Positions 3,661 through 64,000 of a stretch of 64,000 nucleotides of DNA are shown in pieces. The notes under the pieces were generated by a model, which was given only the letters and a program-made list of their open reading frames with translations, had not been told where the DNA came from and ran no database searches. Position 1 is the first letter of the stretch. Each line of letters begins with the position of its first letter. The DNA comes from Anthoceros angustus (taxonomy: Eukaryota; Plantae; Anthocerotophyta): positions 248,001 through 312,000 of the forward strand of contig VJWM01000025.1 in the NCBI GenBank assembly GCA_010909165.1, written 5' to 3'. The position numbers were made by a program, and so were the translations under genes.

Positions 3661-3734
3661 GATCTGGATCACGCAATTCCACGGTGCGCTGCGCCTGCAG
3701 CTAGAAAATTCTAGCATCACAACACACAAACCAT

Positions 3735-3746: not shown

Positions 3747-3748
3747 GT

Positions 3749-3992
3749 TGAAGGATCGTGGCAGCCATGCTGGTGGAAGGAGGAGAGGAGGAGGAGGCAA
3801 GAGTAGCTCTCTCATTGAGATGAGGCTTGGAGGTATTTATACCCTCAATAGCTCCTAGGAAGCTCCACAAGAAGCTCCTAGGAAGGAGCACAAGAAGCTT
3901 CCTAGTGATTAGCTTAAGCTAAACTAATGATATCGACACCTAACTTAGACTAAGTGTATTAGTCTAAGTATATTGAACTTTAATACCTTACA
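3749..3992 (-). mobile_element. 5' LTR of the copia element (~244 bp)
   Basis: Minus strand begins TGTAAGG and ends CCTTCA (TG..CA, imperfect terminal inverted repeat); TATAAATA on the minus strand at 3834-3841; followed by the PBS. Confidence 0.75.
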
Positions 3993-34886: not shown

Positions 34887-34926
34887 AAAACCCTAAAGGG
34901 CTTCCTGACGAGATCGGTATTCCATA
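34887..34926 (-). mobile_element. Right terminal inverted repeat of the transposase-bearing element
   Basis: AAAACCCTAAAGGGCTTCCTGACGAGATCGGTATTCCATA is the exact reverse complement of the first 40 nt of the 35092 element; host sequence AGTGTGCTTG resumes immediately after. Confidence 0.85.
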
Positions 34927-35091
34927 AGTGTGCTTGTATGCTTAGCACCTAGTGCAATTAATGCATATAACCCATATTATATTGAAGTGTTGTTGTTCCT
35001 ATGAATAAAGCCTTAGCCCTTTCTTCCATCAGGCTCCGCCTTGTTCTTTGTCATGACACCTGGAATACATACATGAGCCATGGGCCAAGTG

Positions 35092-36067: not shown

Positions 36068-36359
36068 CAAGTGCTTGGATGGGATGCTGTTCATTCAAAT
36101 TCCCTCAAAAATCTAAACCTTTACCATCTGTCTGCAGCTAAGTACGATGTGGTTGTGGGGCGTGGGCGTCAAACAAATAATTTATTTTACCTCCATTAAG
36201 GACGGAGATGCCGCCATGTGGGTGTGGGGCGATAAACAAATAATTTATGTAAAATCCACTAAAAGACGGACACGCCGCGCAACTTGCTCCGTAGAGAAAA
36301 CTAGGCTTCTAACACTAGGTACCCATCCGGATCCGCTTGCAGTGTAGAGCGCTTAACTA

Positions 36360-36997
36360 CGACGAGTTCATGATCCCACTGTCAAACTAGGAAACCAGAT
36401 GTCTTCATGTGGTTTTTCATAATCTCTGCACGTGCTAATCACGGGAAACCTAGTGAGGCCTTACAACTGTACCTTGAAATGCGTAGGTCAGGAGTGAAGG
36501 CGGATGCTCGTGTCTTTGTTGCCACCCTTCAGGCTTGTGCATTGGCCGCCGACTTGGAAGCTGGCAGAAACGGGCACTGTGATGTGTTGAACAGCGGCAT
36601 TCCTACTAACTTGTTTGTTGGCAACTGCCTGGAAGACATGTACGCAAAATGTGGCGAACTGATTGTGATGCACGCCGGGTTTTTGACACTATGGCCATTC
36701 ATGATGTCGTGACATGGAATTCCCTGATATCTGGGTATGCAAAATGTGGTGAAATAAAAAATGCACAACAGGTTTGCGACAGCATGGCCACAAAGAATGT
36801 GATGACATGGACGGTGCTGATAGCTGGGTATGCTGAACAAGGGCTCGGGCAGGAGGCCCTTCTTGTGTCTGGACAAATGGAGCGTAACCAAGTTACTTTT
36901 GCTTGCCTTCTCTAGGCCTGTGCAAGCACTGGTGCCTTACAGAAGGGCAGGCAGCTGCACTCCGAGATTTTTCAAAGACTATACGCAGGCTGCTGGA
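36360..36997 (+). pseudogene. PPR gene A fragment, unit 1
   Basis: PLS motifs (VFMWFFIISA..., [23 protein letters not shown]); in-frame TAG in LL*AC; deleted after GCTGCTGGA. Confidence 0.85.
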
Positions 36998-37186
36998 CAC
37001 TACTCATTCTGGAAGGTAGTACCCAGGCTGGTTTAGTATGAGCGTACAAAATTCATCTGGTGGCCTGACCTAAGTACGCAAAATGCATCTGTTTGTGCAC
37101 TTTGCACTTGCTCATCCTGCCATGATCCATCGTCTGCTGTGAGACTCATCGTCCGAGAGCGGTACTTGAACGATGTTGGCCACAGT

Positions 37187-40100
37187 ATGGCAACCGGACC
37201 CGTTGTGGACCCAACAAATTGGTGTGTGTACAGGGATCCTGAGAACCTCCCCTCACGTTACTGTAGGAGTCAACCTGGCAACAATCAAGCCTCCAGGTGC
37301 AGCAGTGGAAGGAGCCCAGCATCCACTTCCGAGAAATTTGTTGGTGGACGGATTTTCCAGCGATGGTCGTCGCCAGCAGGAACAGGAGCACTTGTGGCAA
37401 CAATTTTTCTGGACCCTACCATGTGGTGGGACAACAGACGAGATAAGAAGAGCTCCGTTCGCCTGACTTCCGGCGTAAGGGGTCCGGCGAGGTCCTGTGG
37501 TTAAACAGCATGTTAAGCCAGCTTGGGTTGATGAGCAGCTCGTTTCCTTGGATATGCAGATGGGTCATGGTGCCTCGCCTTCCAACTCCACCTCTCGGAT
37601 AAGCCTGAACCTGGCAGGCGTGATCGGAAATGGGCGTCGTAACGGCTGGAACCGTGCGAGCACGTTATGTCAGCAGGGAAGCTTTCTGAGGCCGTTGGAG
37701 CCCTGGAATCTCTGGCGCAGACAGACTCTGCCATTTCCCAGTCTCTGTTTTACACCGTCTTGAAACTGTGTGCAGCTAAGAAGGATCTGGTTGTGGGGCG
37801 CCGAGTTCATGATCTAACACTTAAACTTGGGTACGAGTCGAACGCATATTTGGGAAACCATATCTTGCGCATGTATGCGTGTGGAGGTAGGCTGCAGGAG
37901 GCTATGGATGTGTTCACCAGGGTGGGCAAACCAGATGTTTTCATGTGGTTTTCCATAATATCTGCACATGCCAAGCAGGGGAAACCTAATGAGGCCATTC
38001 AACTGTATCATGAGATGCGCAGGTCAGGAGTGAAGGCGGATGCCCACGTCTTTGCAGCTGCCCTTCAAGCTTGTGCATTTGTCGCCGACTTGGAATCTGG
38101 CAGAAAAGTGCACTGTGATGTGTTGCATAGTAGCATTCCTCTTGACTTGTTTGTTGGAAACTGCCTGGTGGACATGTACGCAAAATGTGGCGAACTGAAG
38201 ATGCACGCCAGGTTTTTGAAAGTTTGACCACAATGTGGTGGATGCCTGATTGCTGGGTATGCACAGCAAGGACTCGCAAGAGGCTTGTTGTGTATGGACA
38301 AATGGAGCAGGAGGGCCTGATTTGGCTAACCATGTTACTTTTGCTTGCCTTCTGAAGGCCTGTGCAAGCTGGTGCCTTACAGAAGGGCAGCAGGCACTGC
38401 ACTCAGATTGTGAAGAGGACTGCTGGATAATATAGTGGTGGCAACTGCCTGGTGGACATGTATGCAAAATGTGGTGAACTGGAAGATGCACGCCAGGTTT
38501 TTGACAGCTTGGCCAAAGGATGTGGTGACATGGAATGCCCTGATTGCTGGGTATGCACAGCAAGGACTCCAAGAGGCGCTTGTTGTGTATGGACAAATGG
38601 AGCAGGAGGCCTGATTTTGGCTGACCATGTTACTTTTGCTTGCCTTCTGAAGGCCTGTGCAAGCACTGGTGCGTTACAGAAGGGCAGGCAGCTGCACTCA
38701 CAGATTGTTGAAAGAGGACTGCTGGATAATGAGTGTTGGGCACTGCCTGGTGGACATGTATGCAAAATGTGGTGAACTGGAAGATGCACGCCAGGTTTTG
38801 ACAGCTTCACAAAGGATGTGGTGACATGGAATGCCCTGATTGCTGGGTATGCACAGCAAGGACTGGCCAAGAGGCGCTTGTATGGACAAATGGAGCAGGA
38901 GCCTCATTGACCATGTTACTTTTGCTTGCCTTCTGAAGGCCTGTGCAAGCACTGGTGCCTTACAAGGGCAGGCAGCTGCACTCACAGATTGTCGAAGAGG
39001 ACTGCTGGATGATGTAGTGGGCAACTGCCTGGTGGACATGTATGCAAAATGTGGTGAACTGGAAGATGCACGCCAGGTTTTTGACAGCTTGGCCACAAAG
39101 GATGTGGTGACATGGAATGCCCTGATTGCTGGGTATGCAGCAAGGACTCGCCAAGAGGCGCTTGTTCTGTATGGACAAATGGAGCAGAGGGCCTCATTTT
39201 GGCTGACCATGTTACTTTTGCTTGCCTTCTGAAGGCCTGTGCAAGCACTGGTGCCTTACAGAAGGGCAGGCAGTTGCACTCAGAGATTGTGGAAAAAGGG
39301 CTGCTAGATAACCCATTGGTTGGCACCGGCCTGGTGGACATGTATGCTAAATGTGGGGAACTGGAAGCTGCTCGCCGGGTTTTTGACAGCTTGGCCACAA
39401 AGGATGTGGTGACATGGAATGCCCTGATATCTGGGTGTGGAGCATGTGATGAAGGTCACAGTGCACTAGCGTGTTTCCAGGAGATGTTAGTTGCTGGTGT
39501 TCAGCCTGACGACGCTACGTTTACATGCCTTTTAGTAGCATGCAGTCATGAGGACTGGTCCATGAGGGTCGCAAGCACTTTGATTCCATGGCTGAACAGC
39601 ATGGCATCAAACCTACTATTGAGCATTACAATTGCATGATTGATCTTCTTGGGCGTGCAGGCCATTTAGATGAGGCAGAGAAGATGCTATTATCATGTGA
39701 GGCCAAAGTAATGTTGTGGCTTGACGTCTTTGTTGAATGCCTGCAAAAGTCACGGGGATATAGAGAGGCGGTGTGGTGTTTTGAAAGCATTGTTAGGCTG
39801 GACCTCAGTGCGTCTGCTATGGCCAATGCCTACGCAGATGCAGGTAGGTGGATGTAGACAGGATTGAAACACAGAGAATGGTAGCAGGAGCTAACAAGAA
39901 ACCTGCAGTGGCGGGCATTGAGGTGAATGAAGTACATACATTTGGTGGGAGAAAGGAGAGATGATATTGCGCTCAAGGTAGAGAGCACGAATGCACGTCT
40001 GAAGCAGGAAGGGGCCTGTACCACAGACAAAGTTGGTGTTGAAGCCAGTGTCTGAGAAGGAAAAGGAAGATGCGCTTTGTGGGCATGCTGAGAAGCTAGC

Positions 40101-40289
40101 TCTGGCGTTTGGTCTGTTGAACACTCCAGTGGGACACCTCTGGTGGTCGAAGAATCTACGCATGTGCAGTGACTGCCACAGTTCCACGGAGATCATGTCA
40201 AGGGTTGAAAAGAGAGACATTGTTGTGGGATGGGATGGGTACCGTGTGCATCGATTCAGCTGGTTCTTGCAGTTGTAAGGTCGACCTGA
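37187..40289 (+). CDS. PLS-class PPR-E1-E2-DYW:KP ('GRP') gene B, unit 1, five DMYAKCGE S-motifs, many small frameshifts
   Basis: [31 protein letters not shown] and a GRP-like end; frameshifts are mostly in homopolymers. Confidence 0.85.
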
Positions 40290-41124
40290 GAGAGCCAGTC
40301 TGCAGAAGGTGAAACTGTGGCACGCGGGGCTGGGAGACATTCCACTGGAGGTGCTGTAAGAAGAAGGTTTTGCTCCACTTTCGATGAGCCCTCAACAGGG
40401 TGTGCTAAAGCATTAGGCATTGTGGCTTTGATCACATCAAAGCTATTGCCTCATGAAGTTTGCTGCTCGGCCCAGAAGATCCACTACGCATGCATGGTCC
40501 TCTGTGCTCAAACCCTCGAAATACCCGCTTGCTCACTGAGGACAGAACCCAAGCTTCAGGGTCCACTGGGAGGTCACGATATTGTGCCAGAACGTCTCCA
40601 GATTGTTGTAAACCGCTGCGGCACAGACGTCCCTGCGAAGCCGACAAGGATTGTGGATTGAACGTTCACATGCTCAGAGGCTGGTCGGCGGAATGTGCCC
40701 GAAAGCCCTGGTAGCCGTCAATGTAGGTGATGCTGCTCGGCAGAGATTCAGACATGGAATATGGCCTTTGCTGCTGTAACAAGACGAGCTGCGCTGGCCC
40801 AAACCAGCAGGGCAGCTCAGACAGGCGCCGAGCTTCTGGGGTTCTGTTGGCAGACGTTTGCTCCAGTCTCGTTACAATGTCCTTGAAAATGGAGTCCTTG
40901 AGAATGATTCGGGTCTGGGTCGCCGCAAAGCTCGCGGTGAATCGGACCGTACGCACATATGCGGCTCATATGCCCACACACCTTGTCCTCTTCTTTCGTC
41001 TCTTCAGGCTCCTCCTGCCTCTGCGTCACCCAGTAGCAACGCTGCAAAAGGTTATGGCACACAAGAGCAGTAGCAGTAGCAGGATCAGGAGCTGGGCCAA
41101 TCAAATCCGGATGACACACATACA

Positions 41125-42470
41125 GTGGAATGGGGCCCAGCAGTAGTTCCAGAACCCACATTGCCTCCAAGTCCATTACTCCCTGAATCCCACGCGACAT
41201 GTGACAGGTTTCACCTCGAGTTATGGCAAGCGAGACGGGCAGCGGAACCGGAGCTTACCTCACAGCTTCTCACCAATTCAGGTCGCTGGTGTAAGGAGAG
41301 CAGGGCCAGGCATTCGCACCACCTGCCTCCCATGGCGGCAGCAGCAGTCGGCAAGAAAAAGCGGCAGGAGCAGCTCTTGTCCAGAAAGTTGGAGGCACAG
41401 GAGGAGCGATGCAGTAACTGTGTGAGGAAGGAGGTAGAAGAGGCTGTCCAAGTGTTGGACCGCCTGGTACAGGAAGGGGTCGTGCTGAGCTCCTGTTCTA
41501 TCCTCTACTAAAGAGGTGCATTGCGGAAGGATGTGGGTCTTGGCAGCCGCGTTCATGCTGCCGTCAGATGTGGGCATGTCGGACATATTCGTGGCCAATC
41601 ACGTCATACGGATGTATGCTTCTTGCTAGATTGGAAAACTGAGGTCAGCACCTCATTGCACCTAACGCCTTTGTCTGGGCTTCCATCATCAAAGCGCATG
41701 CTGATCAGACAGGCTGATGAGGCCATCAACGCCGTGGATGAGAGACGAGTACTAAGCCAAACAACCATGTGTTTGCAGCAGTGCTGAAAGCATGTGCCAG
41801 TGACGGCTTCTGGCAAGCAGGCGCACGCTGACCTTTGCAGAGTGAGGACGAGCCTGATATGGTCGTTGGAAGTTGTCGGACATGGCCAAATGTGGGAACT
41901 TGGACGATGCCCGCAGGGTGTTTGAGGATCTGCCTGCAAGAGATGGTGACATGGACTGCTCCCAGGATCGCAGGATATGCTAACCATGGCTGGTCAAGAA
42001 GCCCTGGATGTGTTTGCAAGCATGCAGCAGGAGGGCATCACGCCGGCCAATAACATACAAGGCCTTCTCATGTGCCAGCACCGCTTTGTACAGGGTGGCA
42101 GCTTCATTGTGTGATCCGAGAAAGGGGCTGGAAACCAATCTCGTGATTGGCAGTGCTCTGGTGACATGTATGCAAAATGCGGAGCTTACGGGATGCTCGA
42201 AAGATATGACACATTGCCTGTGAAGAATGTTGTGACATGGAATGCCATGATTTGCTGGGTATGTGCAGCACGGGTCTGAGAAACTGGCGTTGGCGTATGG
42301 CTCCAGAACACTCCACCCGGCTCAACGCTTGGTTTCTAAGAATCTTCGGATGCAACGACTGCCACCGTAGCACCAAAATCCTGTCACGCCTTGAGAAGCG
42401 AGAAATTGTTGTGAGGGATGCACACCGTGCATCGATTTCTGGGTCCTGTTCGTGTGCGGATCGGCCTTGA
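41125..42470 (+). pseudogene. PPR gene C, unit 1, internally deleted and joined to the C-terminal half of a DYW domain (DRP end)
   Basis: PLS motifs, then junction CAGCACGGGT|CTGAGAAACTGG; +1 T in GATTTGCTGGG just upstream. Confidence 0.75.
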
Positions 42471-44108
42471 CTGGATTTTGCTGGTCGTATAACCTGATGC
42501 TCTGATGCATGTCATGGCGACGTGAAAGCTCACAGAGTAGTTTCCAAAGTTAATCCTTCCAATTTTCGAGAAATCCATCGTCATCGCCTATACAAGAGCG
42601 GGGAGGTGGTTGAGAGAGTCCCATAGCCGGTAAACAGCAAGTGACGGTTGTTCCGACTGGCCTTTACAATCTTTCACCGGCACTGGACAGTATTATTCCA
42701 GCCCCGCAGCTCCAGCGACAGACTCCAGCCTGTGAGAGCCGCCCACTGGGAGGTGAGATGAGGTTCGATTTCCTCAAGGTTCAATGTTGTGTGATGAAGC
42801 CTGCATGCTGATAGTGCCGGTAGCGTACTCTCGTTGGGTGTCCAGGTTAGATGTGCTGGCAAAGGAGGCACCCGCAGGCACTTCTATTTGTTGTGGCAGG
42901 TGACCGTGTGTCCTGAAGCTTCCCATTATGATGAGTGAGTAGGATTGTAACCTGGGCCCTAGTTTTGGAGCATACAGCAGAGCAGAATTGATTTTGGAGG
43001 TGATCGTGCTTGTTCTGTTCTGTGCTGTGGATGCCGTTATGTTTCGTTAGTGAAAAGAGGCCTTTGGTCCTTGTTTCTCATCATGCTTGGAGGAGAAGGA
43101 GGTGGTGGGCGAGGAGGAGGTGGTGGACGAGGAGGAGGTGTTGGAGGAAGAGGAGGAGGATGCACCCCTGGGCCACGGCAGCCAGTCGAGGCTAAGAGCA
43201 CTTAGTTGCCTTGCACTTTTAGCATGGACGTCATGCATGGCAATGGCATTGCAGAATCCGGATCCGTGGACCGTAGTGTCGCAAGCAAAAGGTTGTAGAC
43301 TTCCAGCTCTGCAACTTCATCGCAGAGAGGGTCCAGGAGGCCATTTGAAGACCAGTAAAGCAAACCTGTAACCCTCTGGCCAGCTGAAGAATATTAGGGC
43401 AGACTACCTCGTCATGAATTCATGTGCTGCAGGCCTGCCTAGGCGTGTCACATACATGTACACCGTCAGCTGGAGCCCCAGCCGTCCCTTTGATCAGCAT
43501 ACTGGGATCACTCCGGGCCATGGCCTTCGCGAGCCCACGGCGACCCTTGTCCCTGTCCAGCCAAAATCGGCTTGAATTCAAATGGGAATTCAAGCTGAAC
43601 CTTGCTCTCCGACCAAAGGATATCGATAACGATGCTGGCGCCATCCAGGCTACGATTCCAGCTGCCTTCTGCGATTCCGCCTCCTGAAGCCATGTAGGCG
43701 TTGCAGGCGCATGGCATTGCCTGCAGTGGATCGCCTCACATCTTTAAATTACTTCAATCGCGCAATCAGGCTACATGCTTGGTCCCACTGGTGTGATGAG
43801 GCCAGACTCATGGTCTACCTACATATTGTATCGTTTCTTGACCAGGACTAGGACCAGGACCAGGACCAGGACCAGGTCTCGGATCCTCAAGACTATGAAG
43901 CCTTGTGTCAGTCGAGTACTGTACCATCTTGGATGCCCGCCACGCCTGCACCACGCCGGCTTCGCCCTAAACGCGTTAAGGGCGAAGTCAAGAGATATTT
44001 CTGGTGTAGGCCAGCCAGCTGCTGCTGCAGGCGAGCTGGAGCTGATAGGACTATAAGGTAGAGGGACGCAGCAGACCAGGCCTCAGACCCTAGGTCGAGG
44101 GCGCATCC

Positions 44109-45459
44109 ATGGATGTAGTCGTGCGTGTGACAGAAGTCTTGAGCTCTGCCAGGGGATCGCAGGAAGGGCTCAGGAGGCCATATCGCACAAGGAAACCTGC
44201 AACGCTCAAAACTTGTGAATTGCTTAAGTAGGTACCTCAGGACAGCTCGCTCATGAATTCATCTTCTCTTAGTAACATAGTACTGTGCTCGACTACTGAC
44301 TTTGTAACCTGCTGACGGAATTATATCCATCCTGTACATGTGCTCTGGACAGAGCCCACACTCGAGAGGCTGCATCAATCACCGGAGCTGGCCCATGATG
44401 AGACCATAGTTGCCGCTGGCGTGGAGACGAGCTTCGGCAAAAGTGCTAGTGGACTACTGCTGCCAATGGCTTGGTTTCAGCCATGGAGCAAGGAGAGGAG
44501 GAAGCGGAAGGAAAAATTCAAATCTATGTGTCATTCCTCAACCTCGCCTTGACCGCGCGAACGGTAAGCTTGCTTGTAAACCTTGCGCGTGCAGCATGCA
44601 TCGCCCCTGAGTCCCTGACCAAAATCCGCCATATGATGTTCGTCACAGGCAGTGTCCCAGCTTTTGGCTAGACTGCAACACTAGAACTGGCAGCACGTAT
44701 GGCCGTCACCTGAATAATATGCTGCCATCCCATGCCTGCAGGTGTTGAACCCAAGCCCGCAGTCGAGCAGCACCAGCACTAGTACTTCCAGCGTCTCTGC
44801 GGCTCCGGATCCGGCCGGCTTACACGAACCAGAAGTTGGCTGAACACGCGGTGTCAGCCAAATTGTTGTGCATCACGTGGGGACACGATCCGCGTTACTG
44901 GGAGTGGACATATCGTGCAGGATCGTGGTGAGAGTCTGATTTCGCGGCCACTCTGTTCCGTAGCAGTATCCTTTCCCTTTCAAGAAGCGTTATGTAGGTC
45001 TTCTTGGAATGCTTGGCTTGGCTTGGCTGGGCTTGAGATTGCCTGGTGTATATGTAACTGGGCCTTGCTTGGCAGGTTTGGAGAAGTGGCGTATCTCAAG
45101 ATGGTGTGTTGGCTGCATGTCACTGGGACCATGAGGTGCAATCTGCCGCCTGGAAGGTATACCTTGTCCTGGCTGAACCTGGCCACTTTGATCATCACAC
45201 CTTTGAACACGGAGCCGGTGGTCTTCGACTTCGAGACCAGCGGGGGCAAAGAGGGAGCACTTCACGAAACTTGGCGTTGTACAAACATGAAAGCAGGGAC
45301 GCGGGACAGGGGTGGAGGAGCTGGACGTGGGGAGTTTGTCATTTCAACGCAGAGCTTCCAGTGCAAATCAACTTCTGCATGAGACAAACTGAGGATTACT
45401 GGAAGATGGGCTTATATCTGGATGGGGTGCATGTGCAAAAGACCTCAGATCTGGCCTAG
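44109..45459 (+). CDS. Gene D, unit 1: putative four-helix-bundle-PP2 lectin fusion with many 1-3 bp deletions
   Basis: Collinear with 54496-55906; WGHDPRYWEW, EVAYLKMVCWL and WKMGLYLDGV are retained. Confidence 0.6.
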
Positions 45460-46094
45460 ATTAGGAGGCACCAGACTTATGTATTTCTAGAGAATATCTA
45501 CAAAGCCCAAGAGTAAAGGGCAAGAAGTCTCTAAAAGCCTAAGAGTAAAGGAGGCCAAGTCCAAAAGCCCAACAGCCCAACAGTAAATGGATAAGAAGTC
45601 AAGGGATCAATAGGATTCAAAGACTCAGGCAGGCCAAGTCCAACTTGGTGTGAGATGTGTGCAAGTGTGCTTGTATGCTTAGCACCTAGTACAATTAATG
45701 CATATAACCCATATTAAAGTGTTGTTGTTCCTATGAATAAAGCCTTAGCCCTTTCCACTTCCTTCCATCAGGCTCCGCCTTGTTCTTTGTCATGACACAT
45801 GGAATACATACATGAGCCATGGGCCAAGTGCTTGGATGGGATGCTATTCATTCAAATTCCTCAAAATCTAAACCTTTACCATCTGTCTGCAGCTAAGTAC
45901 GGCGTGGTCGTCAAACAAATAATTTATTTTAACTCCATTAAGGACGGAGATGCCGCCATGTGGGTGTGGGGCGATAAACAAATAATTTATGTAAAATCCA
46001 CTAAAAGACGGACACGCCGCGCAACTTCCTCCGTAGAGAAAACTAGGCTTCTAACACTAGGTACCCATCCGGATCCGCTTGCAGTGTAGAGCGC

Positions 46095-46770
46095 TTAACT
46101 ACGACGAGTTCATGATCCCACTGTCAAACTAGGAAACCGTTCATGATCCCACTGTCAAACTAGGAAACCAGATGTCTTCATGTGGTTTTTCATAATCTCT
46201 GCACGTGCTAAGCACGGGAAACCTAGTGAGGCCTTACAACTGTACCGTGAAATGCGTAGGTCAGGAGTGAAGGCGGATGCTCGCGTCTTTGTTGCCACCC
46301 TTCAGGCTTGTGCTTTGGCCGCCGACTTGGAAGCTGGCAGAAACGTGCACTGTGATGTGTTGAACAGCGGCATTCCTACTAACTTATTTGTTGGCAACTG
46401 CCTGGAAGACATGTACGCAAAATGTGGCGAACTGATTGTGATGCACGCCGGGTTTTGCCACTATGGCCATTCATGATGTCGTGACATGGAATTCCCTGAT
46501 GATATCTGGGTATGCAAAATGTGGTGAAATAAAAATGCACAACAGGTTTTGACAGCATGGCCACAAAGAATGTGGTGACATGGACGGTGCTGATAGCTGG
46601 GTATGCTGAACAAGGGCTCGGGCAGGAGGCCCTTCTTGTGTCTGGACAAATGGAGCGTAACCAAGTTACTTTTGCTTGCCTTCTCTAGGCCTGTGCAAGC
46701 ACTGGTGCCTTACAGAAGGGCAGGCAGCTGCACTCCGAGATTTTTCAAAGACTATACGCAGGCTGCTGGA
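46095..46770 (+). pseudogene. PPR gene A fragment, unit 2
   Basis: Same TAG and same deletion junction (GCTGCTGGA-CACTA-CTCATTCTGG) as unit 1. Confidence 0.85.
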
Positions 46771-46961
46771 CACTACTCATTCTGGAAGGTAGTAATTTCA
46801 GGCTGGTTTAGTATGAGCGTACAAAATTCATCTGGTGGCCTGACCTAAGTACGCAAAATGCATCTGTTTGTGCACTTTGCACTTGCTCATCCTGCCATGA
46901 TCCATCGTCTGCTGTGAGACTCATCGTCCGAGAGCGGTACTTGAACGATGTTGGCCACAGT

Positions 46962-49900
46962 ATGGCAACTGGACGCGTTGTGGACCCAACAAATTGGTGT
47001 GCACAGGATCCCACGAGAACTCCCCTCGCGTTACTGTAGGGAGGAACCCCGGCAAACAATCAAGCCTCGATGCAGCAGTGGAAGGAGCCCAGCATCCACT
47101 TCCGAGGAAATGTTGGGTGCACGGATTTTCCAGCGATGGTAGTCGCCAGGATCAGGAACAGGAGCACTTGTGGCAAAAATTTTTCTGGACCCTACCTTGT
47201 GGTGGGACAACAGACGAGATAAGAAGCTGGTTCGCCTGACGGCCGGGGTCCGGCGAGGTCTGTGGTTAAACAGCAGTTCAAGCCAGCTTGGGTTGATGAG
47301 CAGCTCGTTTCCTTGGAGATGGGATGGTGCCTCGCCTTCTAAGTCCAGCTCTCCGGATAAGCCTGAACCTGGCAGGCGTGCAGGATCGGAAATGGGCGTC
47401 GTAACGGCTAAACCGTGAGCACGTTATGTCAGCAGGGAAGCTTTCTGAGGCCGTTGGAGCCCTGGAATCTCTGGCGCAGACAGACTGCTATTTCTCAGTC
47501 TCTGTTTTACACTGTGCTAAAACTGTGTAGCTAAGAAGGATCTGGTTGTGGGGCGACGAGTTCATGATCTCACTGTCAAACTTGGATACGAGTCGGATGC
47601 ATACTTGGGGAACCATATCTTGCATGTATGCATGTGGAGGTAGGCTGCAGGAGGCCATGGATGTGTTCACCAGGGTGGGGAAACCAAATGTCTTCATGTG
47701 GTTTTCCATAATCTCTGCACATTCTAAGCAGGGAAACCTCATGAGGCCATACAACTGTACCGTGAGATGCGTAGGTCAGGAGTGAAGGCGGATGCTCACG
47801 TCTTTGTAGCTGCCCTTCAAGCTTGTGCATTTGCGCCGACTTGGAATCTGGCAGAAAAGTGCACTGTGATGTGCACAGTGGCATTCCTCCTGACTTGTTT
47901 GTTGGCAACTGCCTGGACATGTATGCAAAATGTGGTGAACTGGAAGATGCACGCCAGGTTTTTGACAGCTTGGCCACAAAGGATGTGGTGACATGGAATG
48001 CCCTGATTGCTGGGTATGCAGCAAGGACTCGCCAAGAGGCGCTTGTTGTGTATGGACAAATGGAGCAGGAGGGCCTGATTTGGCTAACCATGTTACTTTT
48101 GCTTGCCTTCTGAAGGCCTGTGCACTCGCTGGTGCCTTACAAATGGGCAGGCATCTGCACTCACAAATTGTAGAACGAGGACGGCTAGATAATATATTGG
48201 TTGGCAACTGCCTGGTGGACATGTATGCAAAATGTGGTGAACTGGGCGATGCACGCCAGGTTTTTGACAGCTTGGCCACAAAGGATGTGGTGACATGGAA
48301 TGCCCTGATAGCTGGGTATGGACAGCAAGGACTCGTTCAAGAGGCGCTTATGCTGTATGGACAAATGGAGCAAGATGGCCTCATTGTGGCTGACCGTGCT
48401 ACTTTTGCTTGCCTTCTGAAGGCCTGTGCAAGCACTGGTGCCTTACAGAAGGGCAGCTGCACTCACAGATTGTGAAGAGGACTGCTGGATAATGTAGTGT
48501 TGGGCAACTGCCTGGTGGACATGTATGCAAAATGTGGTGAACTGGAAGATGCACGCCAGGTTTTTGACAGCAGCACAAAATGTGGTGACATGGACTGCCC
48601 TGATATCTGGGTATGCACAGCAAGGACTCGGCCAAGAGGCGCTTGTTCTGTATGGACAAATGGAGCAAGAGGGCCTCATTTTGGCTGACCATGTTACATT
48701 TGCTTGCCTTCTGAAGGCCTGTGCAAGCACTGGTGCCTTACAGAAGGGCAGGCAGCTGCACTCACAGATTGTCGAAAGAGGACTGCTGGATAATGTAGTG
48801 GTGGGCAACTGCCTGGTGGACATGTATGCAAAATGTGGTGAACTGGAAGATGCACGCCAGGTTTTTGACAGCTTGGCCACAAAGGATGTGGTGACATGGA
48901 ATGCCCTGATAGCTGGGTATGCGCAGCAAGGACTCGCCAAGAGGCGCTTGTTCTGTATGGACAAATGGAGCAGAGGGCCTCATTTTGGCTGACCATGTGT
49001 TACTTTTGCTTGCCTTCTGAAGGCCTGTGCAAGCACTGGTGCCTTACAGAAGGGCAGGCAGCTGCACTCACAGATTGTGGAAAGAGGACTGCTGGATGAA
49101 TGTAGTGGTGGGCAACTGCCTGGTGGACATGTATGCAAAATGTGGTGAACTGGAAGATGCACGCCAGGTTTTTGACAGCTTGGCCACAAAGGATGTGGTG
49201 ACATGGAATGCTCTGATAGGTGGGTATGCACAGCAAGGACTCGGCCAAGAGGCGCTTGTTCTGTATGGACAAATGGAGCAGAGGCCTCATTTTGGCTGAC
49301 CATGTTACTTTTGCTTGCCTTCTGAAGGCCTGTGCAAGCACTGGTGCCTTACAGAAGGGCAGGCAGCTGCACTCACAGATTGTGGAAAGAGGACTGCTGG
49401 ATAATGTAGTGTTGGGCAACTGCCTGGTGGACATGTATGCAAAATGTGGTGAACTGGAAGATGCACGCCAGGTTTTTGACAGCATGGCCACAAAGGATGT
49501 GGTGACATGGAATGCCCTGATATCTGGGTATGGTACTTGTGATGACGGTCACAGAGCACTAGCTTGTTTTGAGGAGATGTTAGTTCGGTATTCAGCCTGA
49601 TGGTGCTACTTTACTTGCCTTCTAGTAGCATGCAGTCATGCGGGACTGGTCCATGAGGGTCGCAGCACTTTGATTCCATGGCTGAACAGCATGGCATCAA
49701 ACCTACTATTGAGCATTACAATTGCATGATTGATCTTCTTGGGCGTGCAGGCCATTTAGATGAGGCAGAGAAGATGCTATTGTCATGTGAGGCCAAAGTA
49801 ATGTTGTGGGATTGACGTCTTTGTTGAATGCCTGCAAGAGTCACGGAGATATACAAAGGGCGATTTGGTGTTTTGAAAGCATTGTTAGGCTGGACCCTCA

Positions 49901-50405
49901 GTGGGCGTCTGCGTATGTGCTCATGGCAAATGCCTACGCAGATGCAGGTAGGTGGAGCGATGTAGACAGGATTGAAACACAGAGAATGGTGGCAGGAGCT
50001 AACAAGAAACCTGCAGTGGCGACCATTGAGGTGAATAAGCAGGTACATACATTTGTGTGGGAGAAAGGAGAGACGATATTGCGCTCAAGGTAGAGAGCAC
50101 GAATGCACGTCTGAAGCAGGAAGGGGCCACGTACCACACACAAAGTTGGTGTTGAAGCCACTGTCTGAGAAGGAAAAGGAAGATGCGCTTTGTGGGCATG
50201 CTGAGAAGCTAGCTCTGGCGTTTGGTCTGTTGAACACTCCAGTGGGACACCTCTGGTGGTAACGAAGAATCTACGCATGTGCAGTGACTGCCACAGTTCC
50301 ACGGAGATCATGTCAAGGGTTGAAAAGAGAGACATTGTTGTAAGGGATGGGTACCGTGTGCATCGATTCGTATCTGGTTCTTGCACTTGTAAGGGTCGAC
50401 CTTGA
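46962..50405 (+). CDS. PLS-class PPR-E1-E2-DYW:KP ('GRP') gene B, unit 2, six S-motifs
   Basis: Repeated ~303-bp P-L-S triplets; [14 protein letters not shown]; KKPAVATIEV; [12 protein letters not shown]; CSDC; ends [10 protein letters not shown]. Confidence 0.88.
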
Positions 50406-51299
50406 GGTGAAGAACTCGCCAGTCTGCAGAAGGTGAAACTGTGGCACGCGGGGCTGGGAGACATTCCAATTCGGAGGTGGGCGCTGTAAGAAGCAAGGCT
50501 TGTGCTGTGCTCCACTTTCGATGAGCCCTCAACAGGGTGTGCTAAACGGCAGCATTAGGCATTGTGGCTTTGATCACATCAAAGCTATTGCCTCATGAAG
50601 TTTGCTGCTCGGCCCAGAAGATCCACTACGCATGTGCTATGGTCCTCTGTGCTCAAACCCTCGAAATACTTCCGCCCTTGCTCACTGAGGACAGGAAGAA
50701 ACCTAAGCTTCAGGGTCCACTGGGAGGTCACGATATTGTGGCCAGAACGTCTCCAGATTGTTGTAAACCGCTGCGGCACAGACGTCCCTGCGAAGCCGAC
50801 AAGGATTGTGGATTGAACGTTCACATGCTCAGAGGCTGGTCGGCGGAATGTGCCCGAAAGCCCTGGTAGCCGTCAATGTAGGTGATGCCGCTCGGCAGAG
50901 ATTCAGACATGGAATATGTAGCCTTTGCTGCTGTAACAAGACGAGCTGCGCTGGCCCAAGTCCAGCAGGGCAGCTCAGACAGGCTGCCGAGCTTCTGGGG
51001 TTCTGTGGCAGACGTTTGCTCTCAGTCTCGTTTTACAATGTCCTTGAAAATGGAGTCCTTGAGAATGATTCGGGTCTGGGTCGCCGTGCAAAGCTCTCGC
51101 GGTGAATCGGACCGTACGCACATTATGCGGCTCATATGCTTCTCCACACACCTTGTCCTCTTCTTTCGTCTCTTTCAGGCTCCTCCTGCTCTCTGCGTCA
51201 CCCAGTAGCAACGCTGCAAAAGGTTATGGCACACAAGAGCAGTAGCAGTAGCAGGATCAGGAGCTGGGCCAATCAAATCTCCGGATGACACAAGCATAC

Positions 51300-52733
51300 A
51301 GTGGAATGGGGCCCAGCCCAGTAGTTCCAGAACCCACAATTGCCTCTCAAGTCCATTACCTCTGAATCCCACGCGACATGTGACAGGTTTCACCTCGAGT
51401 TATGGCAAGCGAGACGGGCAGCGGAACCGGAGCTTACCTCACAGCTTCTCACCAATTCAGGTCGCTGGTGTAAGGAGCCAGCAGGGCCAGGCATTCGCAC
51501 CACCTGCCTCCCATGGCGGCAGCAGCAGCGTCGGCAAGAAAAAGCGGCAGGAGCAGCTCTTGTCCAGAAAGTTGCGGGAGGCACAGGAGGAGCGATGCAG
51601 TAAATTGTGTGAGGAAGGACGGTAGAAGAGGCTGTCCAAGTGTTGGACCGCCTGGTACAGGAAGGGGTCGCTGGGAGCTCCTGTTCTATCCTCTACTAAA
51701 GAGGTGCATTGCGGAGAAGGATGTGGGTCTTGGCAGCCGCGTTCATGCTCTTGCCGTCAGATGTGGGCATGGGTCGGACATATTCGTGGCCAATCACGTC
51801 ATACGGATGTATGCTTCTCATGCTAGATTGGAGGAAGCGTCCGAGGTTTTCAGCACCCTCATTGCACCTAACGCCTTTGTCTGGGCTTCCATCATCAAAG
51901 CGCATGCTGATCAAGGACAGGCTGATGAGGCCATCAACCTTTACCGTAGGATGCGAGAGACGAGTACTGCGAAGCCAAACAACCATGTGTTTGCAGCAGT
52001 GCTGAAAGCATGTGCCAGTGTTTCAGATTTGGCTTCTGGCAAGCAGGCGCACGCTGACCTTTGCAGAGTGAGGACGAGCCTGATATGGTCGTTGGAAGTT
52101 GTCTGGTGGACATGTATGCCAAATGTGGAACTTGGACGATGCCCGCAGGGTGTTTGAGGATCTGCCTGCAAGAGATGTGGTGACATGGACTGCTCCCAGG
52201 ATCGCAGGATATGCTAACCATGGGCTCAGTCAAGCCCTGGATGTGTTTGCAAGCATGCAGCAGGAGGGCATCACGCCGGCCAATAATTTCACATACACCG
52301 GCCTTCTCAAGGCATGTGCCAGCACCGGGCTTTGCACATAGGGTGGCAGCTTCATTGTGTGATCCGAGAAAGGGGCTGGAAACCAATCTCGTGATTGGCA
52401 GTGCTCTGGTTGACATGTATGCAAAATGCGGGAGCTTACGGGATGCTCGAAAGATATTCGACACATTGCCTGTGAAGAATGTTGTGACATGGAATGCCAT
52501 GATTTGCTGGGTATGTGCAGCACGGGTCTGAGAAACTGGCGTTGGCGTATGGGCTCCAGAACACTCCACCCGGCTCAACGCTGCTGGTTTCTAAGAATCT
52601 TCGGATGTGCAACGACTGCCACCGTAGCACCAAAATCCTGTCACGCCTTGAGAAGCGAGAAATTGTTGTGAGGGATGCACACCGTGTGCATCGATTTCTG
52701 GGTGGCTCCTGTTCGTGTGCGGATCGGCCTTGA
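51300..52733 (+). pseudogene. PPR gene C, unit 2, deleted and fused to a half DYW domain
   Basis: ...GYVQHG|SEKLALAYGLQNTPPG...KNLRMCNDCH...HRFLGGSCSCADRP*; same +1 T frameshift as unit 1. Confidence 0.78.
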
Positions 52734-53407
52734 CTGGATTTTGCTGGTCGTATATAACCTGATGCTCTGATGCATGTCATGGCGACGTGAAAGCTCACAG
52801 AGTAGTTTCCAAAGTTAATCCTTCCGGAATTTTTCTTGAGAAATCCCCATCGTCATCTTCGCCTATACAAGAGCGGGGGAGGTGAAGTTGAGAGAGTCCC
52901 ATAGCCGGTAAACAGCAAGGGACGAGCCGGTTGTTCCGCGACTGGCCCTTTTACAATCTTTCACCGGCACTGGACAGTATTATTCCAGCCAAAACCCGCA
53001 GCTCCAGCGACAGACTCCAGCCTGTGAGAGCCGCCCACTGGGAGGTGAGATGCGAGGTGTTCGATTTCCTCAAGGTTCAATGTTGTGTGGGATGAAGCCT
53101 GCATGCTGATAGTTCGCCGGTAGCGTACTCTCTCGTTGGGTGCGGTGTCCAGGTTAGATGTGCCGGCAAAGGAGGTGCGCACCCGCAGGCACTTCTATTT
53201 GTTGTGGCAGGTGACCGTGTGTCCTGAAGCTTCCCATTATGATGAGTGAGTAGGGGATTGTAACCTGGGCCCTAGTTTTGGAGCGCACATACAGCAGAGC
53301 AGAATTGGTGATTTTGGAGGTGATCGTGCTTGTTCTGTTCTGTGCTGTGGATGCCGTTATGTTTCGTTAGTGAAAAAGAGGCCTTTGGTCCTTGTTTCTC
53401 ATCATGC

Positions 53408-53482
53408 TTGGAGGAGAAGGAGGTGGTGGGCGAGGAGGAGGTGGTGGACGAGGAGGAGGTGTTGGAGGAAGAGGAGGAGGAT
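53408..53482 (+). repeat. GAG-rich tract (also at ~43088-43160)
   Basis: Reads EEKEVVGEEEVVDEEEVLEEEEED on the plus strand. Confidence 0.8.
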
Positions 53483-54209
53483 GCACCCCTGGGCCACGGC
53501 AGCCAGTCGAGGCTAAGAGCACTTAGTTGCCTTGCACTTTTAGCAAGGTGGACGTCGCATGCATGGCAATGGCATTGCGCAGAATCCGGATCCGTGGACC
53601 GTAGTGTCGCAAGCTTGGCAAAAGGTTGTAGACTTCCAGCTCTGCAACTTCATCGCAGAGAGGGTCCAGGAGGCCATTTGAAGACTAGTGCAGTTGTAAG
53701 CAAACCTGTAACCCTCTGGCCAGCTGAAGAATATTATTGGAAGCAGACTACCTCGTCATGAATTCATGTGGCTGCAGGCCTGCCTAGGCGTGTCACATAG
53801 ACATGTACACCGTCAGCTGGAGCCCCCAGCCGTCCCTTTGATCAGCATACTGGGATCACTCCCGGGCCATGGCCAGTTCGCGGAGCCTCCACGGCGACCC
53901 TTGTCCCTGTCCAGCCAAAAATATATCGGCTTCGAATTCGGAATGGGAATTCAAGCTGAACCTTGCTCTCCTCCGACCAAAGGATATCGATAACGATGCT
54001 GCCGGCGCCATCCAGGCTACGATTCCAGCTGCCTTCTGCGATTCCGCCTCCTGAAGCCATGTAGGCGTTGCAGGCGCATGGCATTGCCCGCGAGTGGATC
54101 GCCTCACATCTTTAAATTACTTCAATCGCGCAATCAGGCTACATGCTTGGTCCCACTGGTGTGATGAGGCCAGACTCATGGTCTACCTACATATATTGTA
54201 TCGTTTCTT

Positions 54210-54246
54210 GACCAGGACTAGGACCAGGACCAGGACCAGGACCAGG
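54210..54246 (+). repeat. (GGACCA)n hexamer repeat (also at ~43840-43875)
   Basis: Direct reading. Confidence 0.9.
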
Positions 54247-54495
54247 TCTCGGATCCTCAAGACTATGAAGCCTTGTGTCAGTCGAGTACTGTACCATCTT
54301 GGATGCCCGGCTACGCCTGCACCACTCGCCGGCTTCGCCCTAAACGCGTTAAGGGCGAAGTCAAGAGATATTTCTGGTGTAGGCCAGCCAGCTGCTGCTG
54401 CAGGCGAGCTGGAGCTGATAGGACTATAAGCAAGGTAGAGGCGGACGCAGCAGACCAGGCCCTAGCCTCTAGACCCTAGGTCGAGGGGCGCATCC

Positions 54496-55906
54496 ATGGA
54501 TGTAGTCGTGCGTGTGACAGAAGTCTTGGAGCTCTGCCAGGGGATCGCAGGAAGGGCTCAGGAGGCCATATCGCACAAGGAAACCTGCAACGCTCTGGCA
54601 AAACTTGTGAATTGCTTAAGTAGGTACCTCAGGACAGCTCGCTCATGAATTCATCTTCTCTTAGTAACATAGTACTGTGCTCGACTACTGACTTTGTAAC
54701 CTGCTGACGGAATTATATCCATCCTGTACATGTGTGCTCTGGACAGAGCCCACACTCGAGAGGCTGCATCAATCACCGGAGCTGGCCCATGATGAGACCA
54801 TAGTTGTGCCGCTGGCCGGGGTGGGAGACGAGCTTCAAAAGGCAAAAGTGCTAGTGGACTACTGCTGCCAATTTGGCTTGGTTTCAGCTTTCATGTGGAG
54901 CAAGGAGAGGGAGTTGAAGGAAGCGGAAGGAAAAATTCAAATCTATGTGTCATTCCTCAACCTCGCCTTGACCGCGCGAACGGTAAGCTTGCTTGTAAAC
55001 CTTGCGCGTGCAGCATGCATCGCCCCTGAGTCCCTGACCAAAATCCATTGCCATATGATGTTCGTCACAGGTGGCAGTGTCCCAGCTTTTTGGCTAGACT
55101 GCAACACTGTTAGAACTGGCAGCACGTATGGCCGTCACCTGAATAATATGCTGCCATCCTATGCCTGCAGGTGTTGAACTCCAAGCCCGGGCAGTCGAGC
55201 AGCACCAGCACTAGTACTTCCCAGCGTCCCTCTGCGGCTCCGGATCCGGAGCCGGCTTACACGAACCAGAAGTTGGCTGAACACGCGGTGTCAGCCAAAT
55301 TGTTGTGCATCACGTGGGGACACGATCCGCGTTACTGGGAGTGGACATATCGTGCAGGATCGTGGTGAGAGTCTGATTTCGCGGCCACTCTGTTCCGTAG
55401 CAGTATCCTTTCCCTTTCAAGAAGCGTTATGTAGGTCTTCTTGGAATGCTTGGCTTGGCTTGGCTGGGCTTGGAGATTGCCTGGTGTATATGTAACTGGG
55501 CCTTGCTTGGCAGGTTTGGAGAAGTGGCGTATCTCAAGATGGTGTGTTGGCTGCATGTCACTGGGACCATGAGGTGCAATCTGCCGCCTGGAAGGTATAC
55601 CTTGTCCTGGCGGCTGAACCTGGCCACTTTGATCATCACACCTTTGAACACGGAGCCGGTGGTCTTCGACTTCGAGACCAGCGGGGGCAAAGAGGGAGCA
55701 CTTCACGAAACTTGGCGTTGTACAAACATGAAAGCAGGGACGCGGGACAGGGGTGGAGGGAGCTGGACGTGGGGGAGTTTGTCATTTCCCCCAACGCAGA
55801 GCTTCCAGTGCAAATCAACTTCTGCATGAGACAAACTGAGGATTACTGGAAGATGGGCTTATATCTGGATGGGGTGCATGTGCAAAAGACCTCAGATCTG
55901 GCCTAG
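54496..55906 (+). CDS. Gene D, unit 2: putative MCAfunc/MLKL-like four-helix bundle fused to a PP2 lectin domain (~315 aa, 4 exons)
   Basis: Exons 54496-54619, 54747-54982, 55171-55364 and 55514-55906 with GT-AG introns total 947 nt, one base short of frame at a G run near 55682. N-terminus: HKETCNALAKLVNCLKPTLERL...ETIVVPLAGVGDELQKAKVLVDYC. C-terminus: SAKLLCITWGHDPRYWEW, FGEVAYLKMVCWL, LPPGRY, GWRELDVGEF, KMGLYLDGV. Confidence 0.8.
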
Positions 55907-56544
55907 ATTAGGAGGCACCAGACTTATGTATTTCTAGAGAATATCTCTACAAAGCCCAAGAGTAAAGGGCAAGAAGTCTCTAAAAGCCTAAGAGTAAAGG
56001 AGGCAGGCCAAGTCCAAAAAGCCCAACAGCCCAACAGTAAATGGATAAGAAGTCAAGGGATCAATAGGATTCAAAGACTCAGGCAGGCCAAGTCCAACTT
56101 GGTGTGAGATGTGGTGTGTGCAAGTGTGCTTGTATGCTTAGCACCTAGTACAATTAATGCATATAACCCATATTAAAGTGTTGTTGTTCCTATGAATAAA
56201 GCCTTAGCCCTTTCCACTTCCTTCCATCAGGCTCCGCCTTGTTCTTTGTCATGACACATGGAATACATACATGAGCCATGGGCCAAGTGCTTGGATGGGA
56301 TGCTATTCATTCAAATTCCCTCAAAAATCTAAACCTTTACCATCTGTCTGCAGCTAAGTACGGCGTGGTCGTCAAACAAATAATTTATTTTAACTCCATT
56401 AAGGACGGAGATGCCGCCATGTGGGTGTGGGGCGATAAACAAATAATTTATGTAAAATCCACTAAAAGACGGACACGCCGCGCAACTTCCTCCGTAGAGA
56501 AAACTAGGCTACTAACACTAGGTACCCATCCGGATCCGCTTGCA

Positions 56545-58441
56545 GTGTAGAGCGCTTAACTACGACGAGTTCATGATCCCACTGTCAAACTAGGAAACCG
56601 TTCATGATCCCACTGTCAAACTAGGAAACCAGATGTCTTCATGTGGTTTTTCATAATCTCTGCACGTGCTAAGCACGGGAAACCTAGTGAGGCCTTACAA
56701 CTGTACCGTGAAATGCGTAGGTCAGGAGTGAAGGCGGATGCTCGCGTCTTTGTTGCCACCCTTCAGGCTTGTGCTTTGGCCGCCGACTTGGAAGCTGGCA
56801 GAAACGTGCACTGTGATGTGTTGAACAGCGGCATTCCTACTAACTTATTTGTTGGCAACTGCCTGGAAGGCATGTACGCAAAATGTGGCGAACTGATTGA
56901 TGCACGCCGGGTTTTTGCCACTATGGCCATTCATGATGTCGTGACATGGAATTCCCTGATGATATCTGGGTATGCAAAATGTGGTGAAATAAAAAATGCA
57001 CAACAGGTTTTCGACAGCATGGCCACAAAGAGTGTGGTGACATGGACGGTGCTGATAGCTGGATATGCTGAACAAGGGCTCGGGCATGAGGCCCTTCTTG
57101 TGTCTGGACAAATGGAGCAGGAGGGGCTGATTTTGGCTAACCAAGTTACTTTTGCTTGCCTTCTCTAGGCCTGTGCAAGCACTGGTGCCTTACAGAAGGG
57201 CAGGCAGCTGCACTCAGACATTTTTCAAAGACTATACGCAGGCTGCTGGATAACGTAGTGCTGGGCAACTGCTTTGTGGACATGTATGCAGAATGTGGTG
57301 AGCTGGAAGACGCCCGCCAGGTTTTTGGCAGCTTGACCACGAAGAATGTGGTGACATGGAATGCCCTGATTGCTGGCTATGCACAGCAAGGACTGGTCCA
57401 AGAGGCGCTTGTTGTAGCACTTGTGCCTTACAGCAGGGCAGGCACCTGCACTCACAGATTGTCGAAAGAGGACTCTCGGATAACATTGTGTTGGCCACCT
57501 GCCTGGTGGACATGTATGCAAAATGTGGTAAAGTGGAAGACGCACGAACACAAAGGATGTTTTCACATGGACCGCCCTGATATCGGGGTAGGGTATTTGT
57601 GATGAAGGTCACAAAAGCTCTAGCTTGTTTTGAGGAGATGTCAGTTGCTGGTATTCAGCCAAATGATGCAACTTTTACTTGCCTTCTAGTGGCATGCAGT
57701 CATGAGGGACTGGTGGATGAGGGTCGCAAGCACTTTGTTTCCATGCCTGAACAGCATGGCATCAAACCTACTACCGAGCATTACAATTGCATGAGTGATC
57801 TTGTTGGGCGTGCAGGCCATTTAAATGGGGCAGAGAAGATGCTATCAAAGGGCCAAAGTAATGTCGTTGGCTTGACGTGTTTGTTGAATGCCTGCAAAAG
57901 TCACGGTAATGTAGAGAGGGCGATGTGTTGTTTTGAAAGCATTGTTTGGCTGGAGCCTCATATGGGCTCATGGCCAATGCCTAAGCAGATGCAGGTAGGT
58001 GGACCGATGTGGGCAGGGTTGAATCACAGAGAACGGTAGCAGGAGCCCACAAGAAACCTGCAGTGGCGAGAGTTGAGGTGAAGAAGCAGGTACACACCTG
58101 TGCGGTTGGAGAAAGAAGAGATGATCTTGCACTTAAAGGTAGAGAGCACGAATGCACGTCTGAAGCAGGAAGGAGACCACGTACCTCACACAAAGTTGGT
58201 GTTGAACCCACTGTCTGAGAAGGAAAAGGAAGATGCGCTTTGTGGACATGCTGAGGAACTAGCTCTGGCGTTTGGTCTGTTGAACACTCCGAGTAGGACA
58301 CCTCTGGTGGTAACGAAGAATCTACGCATGTGCAGCGATTGCCACAGCTCCACGGAGGTCATGTCAAGGCTTGAACTGAGAGATGGGTACCGTGTGCATC
58401 GATTCGCAGGTGGTCCTTGTACTTGGAAGGATCGACCGTGA
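56545..58441 (+). pseudogene. PPR-DYW:KP gene A, unit 3, with full 3' part, degenerate
   Basis: No N-terminus; in-frame TAG at ~57166; KKPAVARVEV; HAEE; deletion of KRDIVV; terminal CTWKDRP*. Confidence 0.85.
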
Positions 58442-62623: not shown

Positions 62624-64000
62624 ATGACACAAGCATACAGTGGAATGGGGCCCAGCCCAGTAGTTCCAGAACCCACAATTGCCTCCAAGTCCATTACCTC
62701 TGAATCCCACGCGACATGTGACAGGTTTTCACCTCGAGTTATGGCAAGCGAGACGGGCAGCGGAACCGGAGCTTACCTCACAGCTTCTCACCAATTCAGG
62801 TCGCTGGTGTAAGGAGCCAGCAGGGCCAGGCATTCGCACCACCTGCCTCCCATGGCGGCAGCAGCAGCGTCGGCAAGAAAAAGCGGCAGGAGCAGCTCTT
62901 GTCCAGAAAGTTGCGGGAGGCACAGGAGGAGCGATGCAGTAAATTGTGTGAGGAAGGACGGGTAGAAGAGGCTGTCCAAGTGTTGGACCGCCTGGTACAG
63001 GAAGGGGGTCGTGCTGGGAGCTCCCTGTTCTATCCTCTACTAAAGAGGTGCATTGCGGAGAAGGATGTGGGTCTTGGCAGCCGCGTTCATGCTCTTGCCG
63101 TCAGATGTGGGCATGGGTCGGACATATTCGTGGCCAATCACGTCATACGGATGTATGCTTCTCATGCTAGATTGGAGGAAGCGTCCGAGGTTTTCAGCAC
63201 CCTCATTGCACCTAACGCCTTTGTCTGGGCTTCCATCATCAAAGCGCATGCTGATCAAGGACAGGCTGATGAGGCCATCAACCTTTACCGTAGGATGCGA
63301 GAGACGAGTACTGCGAAGCCAAACAACCATGTGTTTGCAGCAGTGCTGAAAGCATGTGCCAGTGTTTCAGATTTGGCTTCTGGCAAGCAGGCGCACGCTG
63401 ACCTTTGCAGAGTGAGGACGAGCCTGATATGGTCGTTGGAAGTTGTCTGGTGGACATGTATGCCAAATGTGGGAACTTGGACGATGCCCGCAGGGTGTTT
63501 GAGGATCTGCCTGCAAGAGATGTGGTGACATGGACTGCCATGATCGCAGGATATGCTAACCATGGGCTCGGTCAAGAAGCCCTGGATGTGTTTGCAAGCA
63601 TGCAGCAGGAGGGCATCACGCCGGCCAATAATTTCACATACACCGGCCTTCTCAAGGCATGTGCCAGCACCGGGGCTTTGCACATAGGGTGGCAGCTTCA
63701 TTGTGTGATCCGAGAAAGGGGCTGGAAACCAATCTCGTGATTGGCAGTGCTCTGGTTGACATGTATGCAAAATGCGGGAGCTTACGGGATGCTCGAAAGA
63801 TATTCGACACATTGCCTGTGAAGAATGTTGTGACATGGAATGCCATGATTGCTGGGTATGTGCAGCACGGGTTTGGTCAGGAAGCACTTGATCTATACGC
63901 AACCATGGCCGTGCAGGAGAGCATCACTTCAGCAAATAGTTTTACGTATGCTGGTCTGCTCAAGGCATGTGCCACCATCGGTGCTCTGCATCAGGGAAAG
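62624..64000 (+). CDS. PPR gene C, unit 3, undeleted PLS array continuing past the window end
   Basis: Continues GYVQHGFGQEALDLYATMAVQESITSANSFTYAGLLKACATIGALHQGK past the point where units 1 and 2 are deleted. Confidence 0.8.

Follow-up and report, generated by a model that had tools for sequence, protein, structure and literature searches.

The four-exon gene at positions 54496–55906 of the window (the whole 64,000-nt stretch of Anthoceros angustus DNA analyzed here) is real, spliced and transcribed, and it is a nuclear gene of a land plant. In our reading, to which we assign a probability of roughly 0.55, its product is best explained as an expressed, soluble chimerolectin of 315 amino acids, in which a C-terminal PP2 lectin domain would serve recognition and an N-terminal helical domain the output. 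What looks in a noisy assembly like a frameshifted, unannotated locus is an intact expressed gene.

Two public runs (X1 and X2), both from one sample of one organism, contain this stretch. Run X2 yields a single contig of 1192 nt with a word depth of 915.7, no other letters and no substitutions relative to the window. It omits exactly 54620–54746, 54983–55170 and 55365–55513. The assignment of X2 to RNA is a guess, while its template was evidently spliced, because three GT..AG introns have been removed precisely. The four-exon model proposed in the initial annotation is therefore confirmed, since the contig drops the three introns and nothing else, and the junctions between exons 1–2 and exons 3–4, which had been singled out there for checking, are present in one contig. 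The coordinates of the gene and its parts are given in Table 1. The 5' leader, about 120 nt long, has no ATG and carries an in-frame TAG at 54463. A (GACCAG)n microsatellite is located at 54215–54250, approximately 250 nt upstream of the start codon.

Table 1. Features of the helical-domain–lectin gene and of its second copy (positions in the window)
Feature	Positions	Strand	Evidence
5' untranslated leader	54400..54495	+	X2 contig covers 54400–54619, with 24 more letters upstream, to about 54376
Exon 1, coding part: start codon and first helix region, aa 1–41 and first base of codon 42	54496..54619	+	X2 joint 54619>54747
Intron 1, 127 nt, GT..AG	54620..54746	+	Absent from X2 contig
Exon 2: remainder of the N-terminal helical domain, aa 42–120	54747..54982	+	MCAfunc PF19584 match
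Intron 2, 188 nt, GT..AG	54983..55170	+	Absent from X2 contig
Exon 3: Ser/Thr/Pro-rich linker, aa 121 to about 158, then start of PP2 with motif ITWGHDPRYWEW	55171..55364	+	PP2 profile 5–26; linker composition
Intron 3, 149 nt, GT..AG	55365..55513	+	Absent from X2 contig
Exon 4, coding part: rest of PP2; stop codon 55904–55906	55514..55906	+	PP2 profile 32–88 (55515–55682) and 96–146 (55715–55882)
Run of five G, apparent −1 frameshift site	55683..55687	+	X2 contig reads six G
3' untranslated region	55907..56000	+	X2 piece 55513–56000, with about 30 letters beyond
Second gene copy in the preceding cassette unit	44138..45456	+	tblastn, DNA alignment, indel list

The assembled exons together measure 947 nt and lack one base of a whole number of codons. 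The frame shifts inside the PP2 domain, where the match to profile positions 32–88 ends at 55682 and the match to positions 96–146 restarts from 55715 in the next frame; the five-G run is the sole homopolymer between these two points. The X2 contig inserts one G after 55682, where the run begins, and thus reads six G where the assembly has five. With the sixth G, the transcript-derived frame is open for 315 codons, and the PP2 pieces of exon 4 that are split in the assembly become contiguous. The reading frame is therefore intact in the RNA, and the attribution of the break to one base in a G homopolymer, made initially from the letters alone, proved correct. The break in the window either reflects an under-call of the homopolymer in the assembly or distinguishes this copy from a transcribed one that is identical in all else, as the X2 transcript could derive from another identical copy with six G outside the window. 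The 315-codon translation contains every motif that had been quoted for the predicted protein: HKETC, LERL, ETIVVPLAGVGDEL, LVDYC, WGHDPRYW, EVAYLKMVCW, GWRELDVGEF, and KMGLYLDGV.

A PP2/Nictaba lectin domain makes up the C-terminal half, as judged from profile and structure-database alignments, and keeps the aromatic motif of the sugar site. It gives three collinear matches to the PP2 family (PF14299), with scores of 21.9 bits (profile 5–26), 33.0 bits (32–88), and 31.9 bits (96–146), which together span positions 5–146 of 148; two of the three pieces alone exceed the gathering score of 25 bits. When exon 3 was compared with the sequences of PDB entries, the best five matches were all PP2 lectins, namely the cucumber 17-kDa phloem lectin and Nictaba, albeit with weak E-values over a short stretch. 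In particular, ITWGHDPRYWEW aligns with ITWGDDTRYWSW of the cucumber lectin (7vs6) and with Nictaba (8ad2) at ITWG.D.RYW.W. In the Nictaba crystal structure, Trp15 and Tyr21 of the GlcNAc site lie in this motif; the site residues conserved in the family further include Val39, Trp41, and Trp151 (PMC11632377). Motifs V-C-W (for Val39/Trp41) and D-Y-W (for Trp151) occur at the corresponding places, as matched by eye. As the site motifs are kept, a working sugar site is likely. The PP2 domain recognized in the initial annotation thus stands, on both the collinear family matches and the lectin alignments. The first part of exon 4 (4a) had no match among PDB sequences, and the matches of the second part (4b), to a clostridial toxin repeat region and to an antibody, were rejected as chance (E ≥ 0.1, no stretch passing). 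When the C-terminal PP2 piece was used for a word search, no candidate among proteins of 66–210 aa, a length range that excludes full-length relatives, shared three words with it.

The N-terminal 120 residues are more diverged. Exon 2 alone matches MCAfunc (PF19584) with E = 0.0054 and 16.9 bits, its residues 3–72 aligning to profile positions 33–103 of 143, whereas the gathering score is 35. Exon 1, read nine residues into the intron, matches DUF7792 (PF25055) with E = 0.013 and 16.1 bits at profile positions 6–45 of 120, against a gathering score of 27. Neither of the N-terminal Pfam matches thus reaches its gathering score. The two exons are independent, and each match covers the stretch of its profile that the order of the exons predicts; moreover, Atlas clusters contain proteins annotated with both MCAfunc and DUF7792. 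The initial annotation had pointed to MCAfunc from a motif pattern; this was a good lead, in that exon 2 matches the family in the correct register, although below the gathering score. The string HK..C / PL.G..D.L / LV..C itself is what we take to be the MCAfunc family pattern.

Protein language-model neighbors point to the same set of families, scores below 0.9 being treated as leads only. For exon 2, these are streptophyte clusters of PUB10_N, DUF7792, PUB2_N, MCAfunc, RPW8, and MLKL_N (0.77–0.85), and nine of the ten best neighbors that bear a family have a common family or clan. For exon 1, they are MLKL_N/DUF7792/MCAfunc, Rx_N, and HeLo clusters (0.76–0.81). Residues 1–120 are rich in predicted helix and contain no hydrophobic or transmembrane segment, the highest 19-residue Kyte–Doolittle mean being 1.16. 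The AlphaFold2 model of exon 2 only (mean pLDDT 69) has two confident helices, 26–41 and 44–77. A Foldseek search of this partial model against PDB found no match, and the Atlas shape search retrieved generic helices. The sole PDB sequence match of exon 2, an RRM protein at E = 0.28, was dismissed as chance. Overall, the evidence for membership in MCAfunc, DUF7792 or MLKL_N is weak but consistent. Residues 1–120 are probably a diverged member of a plant group of helical N-terminal domains which Pfam splits into MCAfunc, DUF7792, MLKL_N, and PUB_N, and we hold the assignment to this group to be likely.

The N-terminal domain appears to have no close annotated relative. In an exhaustive phmmer search of 1.84 billion representative proteins, exon 2 (78 aa) had no match at E ≤ 0.001, itself included, a result that excludes only relatives of more than about 35–40% identity. 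As the search did not recover the gene itself, the gene is missing from that library.

The combination of domains has a short record. In Marchantia polymorpha, Nishii et al. (2021) recorded MCAfunc with PP2 (PF14299) as an alternative partner, placed the proteins in the MCA clade, and did not study them further; their supplements name PP2 only in a heat-map legend, with no accession, and their hornwort data concern the MCA gene itself only (PMC8049495). In the same paper, U-box ligases and kinases also carry MCAfunc N-terminally. A 2026 preprint labels the four-helix bundle found in plant MLKLs with, among others, the MCAfunc InterPro entry (bioRxiv 10.64898/2026.08.07.743466). The literature on PP2 together with MLKL or with a four-helix bundle yielded nothing relevant. 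The MCAfunc + PP2 architecture has thus been catalogued once and is uncharacterized rather than unseen, because it was already listed for Marchantia polymorpha, and the gene described here is a new diverged member. The initial remark that such an architecture is not known to have been characterized holds insofar as there is no study of it so far, but the combination itself was on record.

The known systems that come closest share parts of this layout. The Marchantia proteins are likewise uncharacterized and combine the same two Pfam families in one bryophyte protein; the likeness is by family listing, and the kinship is distant at most, because exon 2 lacked any relative at the threshold given above. 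Plant PP2 domains are found fused to F-box, TIR, and AIG1 domains. The F-box–Nictaba, TIR–PP2, and AIG1–PP2 proteins of flowering plants resemble the present protein in having a C-terminal PP2 with the Trp/Tyr sugar-site motif after an N-terminal output domain, and in being cytosolic, with no signal peptide. Unlike these, with their F-box, TIR or GTPase partners, it has a helical MCAfunc-like domain of about 120 aa and a Ser/Thr/Pro-rich linker.

Plant MLKLs, such as wheat Pm13 (PMC10951266) and a helper MLKL (bioRxiv 10.64898/2026.08.07.743466), have an N-terminal helical domain annotated as MCAfunc, MLKL_N or Cbl-N, and a similar layout of N-terminal output and C-terminal regulatory or sensor domain. 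By contrast, Pfam finds no kinase or pseudokinase domain in any exon of our gene, and no brace region was identified. With no kinase domain and with PP2 at the C-terminus, the protein is ruled out as a plant MLKL. MCA1 and MCA2 combine MCAfunc with a C-terminal PLAC8 domain, and MCA proteins have an N-terminal hydrophobic segment with Asp21. Our protein matches the core of the MCAfunc profile weakly (33–103 of 143) and has the HK..C motif, but the last ca. 40 profile positions, on the EF-hand-like and coiled-coil side, are missing, as are PLAC8 and the hydrophobic N-terminal segment. It is therefore ruled out as an MCA channel protein, the C-terminus being PP2 rather than PLAC8 and no hydrophobic segment being present.

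The preferred reading, a soluble lectin chimera, can be sketched as follows. The protein has neither a signal peptide nor a transmembrane segment, and its linker of about 40 aa is rich in Ser, Thr, and Pro. On the plan of PP2 fusions such as F-box–PP2 and TIR–PP2, recognition would fall to the PP2 domain and the output to the N-terminal domain. The ligands of PP2 in the cytosol or nucleus would be glycans of the GlcNAc type or glycoproteins, endogenous or microbial; on binding, the helical domain would oligomerize or associate with a membrane and thereby give rise to a stress or defense signal. We infer oligomerization or membrane association as the output from the families to which the N-terminal domain is similar. 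It might take the form of membrane permeabilization or Ca2+ influx, as in MLKL and MCA, or plain protein docking, as in U-box ligases. An expressed natural fusion of such a helical domain and a lectin, only 315 aa long, would be a compact system in which to ask whether glycan binding can gate a bundle of this type, and the gene also offers a handle on the role of the MCAfunc proteins of bryophytes that are neither MCA nor kinases.

Docking by itself could account for the protein. The helical domain would then be a docking or dimerization module of the kind found in plant U-box ligases, and the product a bivalent lectin of the cytosol, or else an adaptor whose lectin part recruits glycoproteins to a partner. 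The best language-model neighbors of exon 2 are indeed PUB10_N and PUB2_N, at 0.85 versus 0.77–0.78 for MCAfunc and 0.77 for RPW8; the protein is soluble by its hydropathy, and, as Nictaba acts as a dimer (PMC11632377), an added oligomerization module would make functional sense. However, the Pfam matches are to MCAfunc and DUF7792 only, with none to the PUB_N models, and the protein carries no U-box or other partner domain. By analogy with the ligases, we consider such an adaptor possible but tentative.

The initial annotation had proposed an executor gated by glycan. Its bundle would form a pore or Ca2+ channel, stay inactive until PP2 binds its glycan, and then oligomerize and, in the manner of MLKL, RPW8-type, and CC domains, permeabilize a membrane. 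Plant immunity and Ca2+ signaling have their membrane-acting outputs in the helical N-terminal domains of MLKL, RPW8/ADR1, CC-NLR, and MCA proteins, usually under the control of a kinase or NB-LRR. The weak matches and language-model neighbors of our domain lie in families with such activity (MCAfunc, MLKL_N, RPW8, HeLo, and Rx_N), and the order of output domain, linker, and C-terminal sensor is that of MLKL and TIR–PP2. In addition, a region of about 170 aa, the MCAfunc region of MCA, suffices for Ca2+ permeation (PMC11663713), and plant MLKLs confer resistance (PMC10951266). Still, the same domain group heads U-box E3 ligases, for which no pore function is known (PMC8049495), the protein has no hydrophobic segment, and the gene lies outside any immune-gene cluster. 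An executor of this kind seems rather unlikely to us.

In its general form, this idea would define a class of sensor–executors in which a cytosolic lectin, and not a kinase or NB-LRR, gates an MLKL/MCA-type bundle, leading to a Ca2+-permeable pore or to cell death. The trigger would be GlcNAc glycans that are microbial or exposed to the cytosol, and the Ser/Thr-rich linker might serve as a lock within the molecule that depends on O-GlcNAc. Such a class, proposed by analogy, is quite doubtful at present.

Residues 1–120 could also be a lineage-specific helical region unrelated to MCAfunc and MLKL, the weak matches reflecting nothing but helical composition. Every match is below its curated threshold, the 1.84 billion representatives gave exon 2 no relative at E ≤ 0.001, and the hydrophobic moment of the N-terminal domain shows an amphipathicity not above that of shuffled sequences (z = 1.3). 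On the other hand, two exons match, independently, two co-annotated families in the expected parts of their profiles, the motif string fits the pattern that we assume for the family, and nine of the ten best family-bearing exon 2 neighbors agree on a family or clan. An unrelated helical region is unlikely, and we retain a diverged member of the MCAfunc/DUF7792/MLKL_N/PUB_N group as the reading of the N-terminal domain.

The five-G run recurs in the second copy of the gene; 23 small deletions (1–8 nt) and few substitutions set that copy apart from the first. Either this duplicate has decayed or its sequence is poorly polished. Run X1 provides a DNA contig that spans the unspliced gene, also with five G, and has 13 small gaps relative to the window, mostly in or beside short homopolymer runs. 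At several sites (55087, 55472, and 55771), all of them homopolymers, the gaps in X1 coincide with deletions in the second copy. As far as can be judged from the alignments, the common indel sites fit systematic long-read error better than divergence, the alternative being real shared variants. A pair of decaying pseudogenes, with a genuine frameshift in each copy and a locus that is being lost since its duplication, would explain the five G in both copies and in X1 and the 23 further deletions, but it is very improbable given the abundant, fully spliced transcript, otherwise identical to the first copy, with six G and an open frame, and given that the X1 differences, mostly at short homopolymers and several at the deletion sites of the second copy, look like long-read error.

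Both copies belong to a tandem cassette of approximately 10–11 kb, of which the window holds about three units (36108–45860, 45863–56323, and 56324 onward), with the gene at the end of the unit. The other cassette genes encode PPR repeat proteins, for example the ORFs at 51513–52154, 56641–57165, and 62899–63525. The amplification is a recent segmental duplication of a mixed, PPR-dominated cassette rather than an immune-gene array, and as such it says little about the function of the gene. That the gene is tandemly amplified, as had been pointed out initially with reference to immune genes, is correct to the extent that a second copy exists within a repeated cassette; the comparison with immune genes fails, as the neighbors are PPR and not defense genes.

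Elsewhere in the window, two GC-rich stretches (2800–3750 and 25900–27900, GC content 0.58–0.63) contain long overlapping ORFs on both strands; the ORFs at 2876–3748, 25948–26901, and 27004–27834 have no Pfam match. Within 36108–64000, each cassette unit holds an internal tandem array with a period of about 300 nt, for example at 47898–49532. A segment of 172 nt at 34926–35097 is 91% identical to 56122–56295, just 3' of the gene, and looks like what is left of a preceding unit of the cassette, beside the transposon at 32400–36073.
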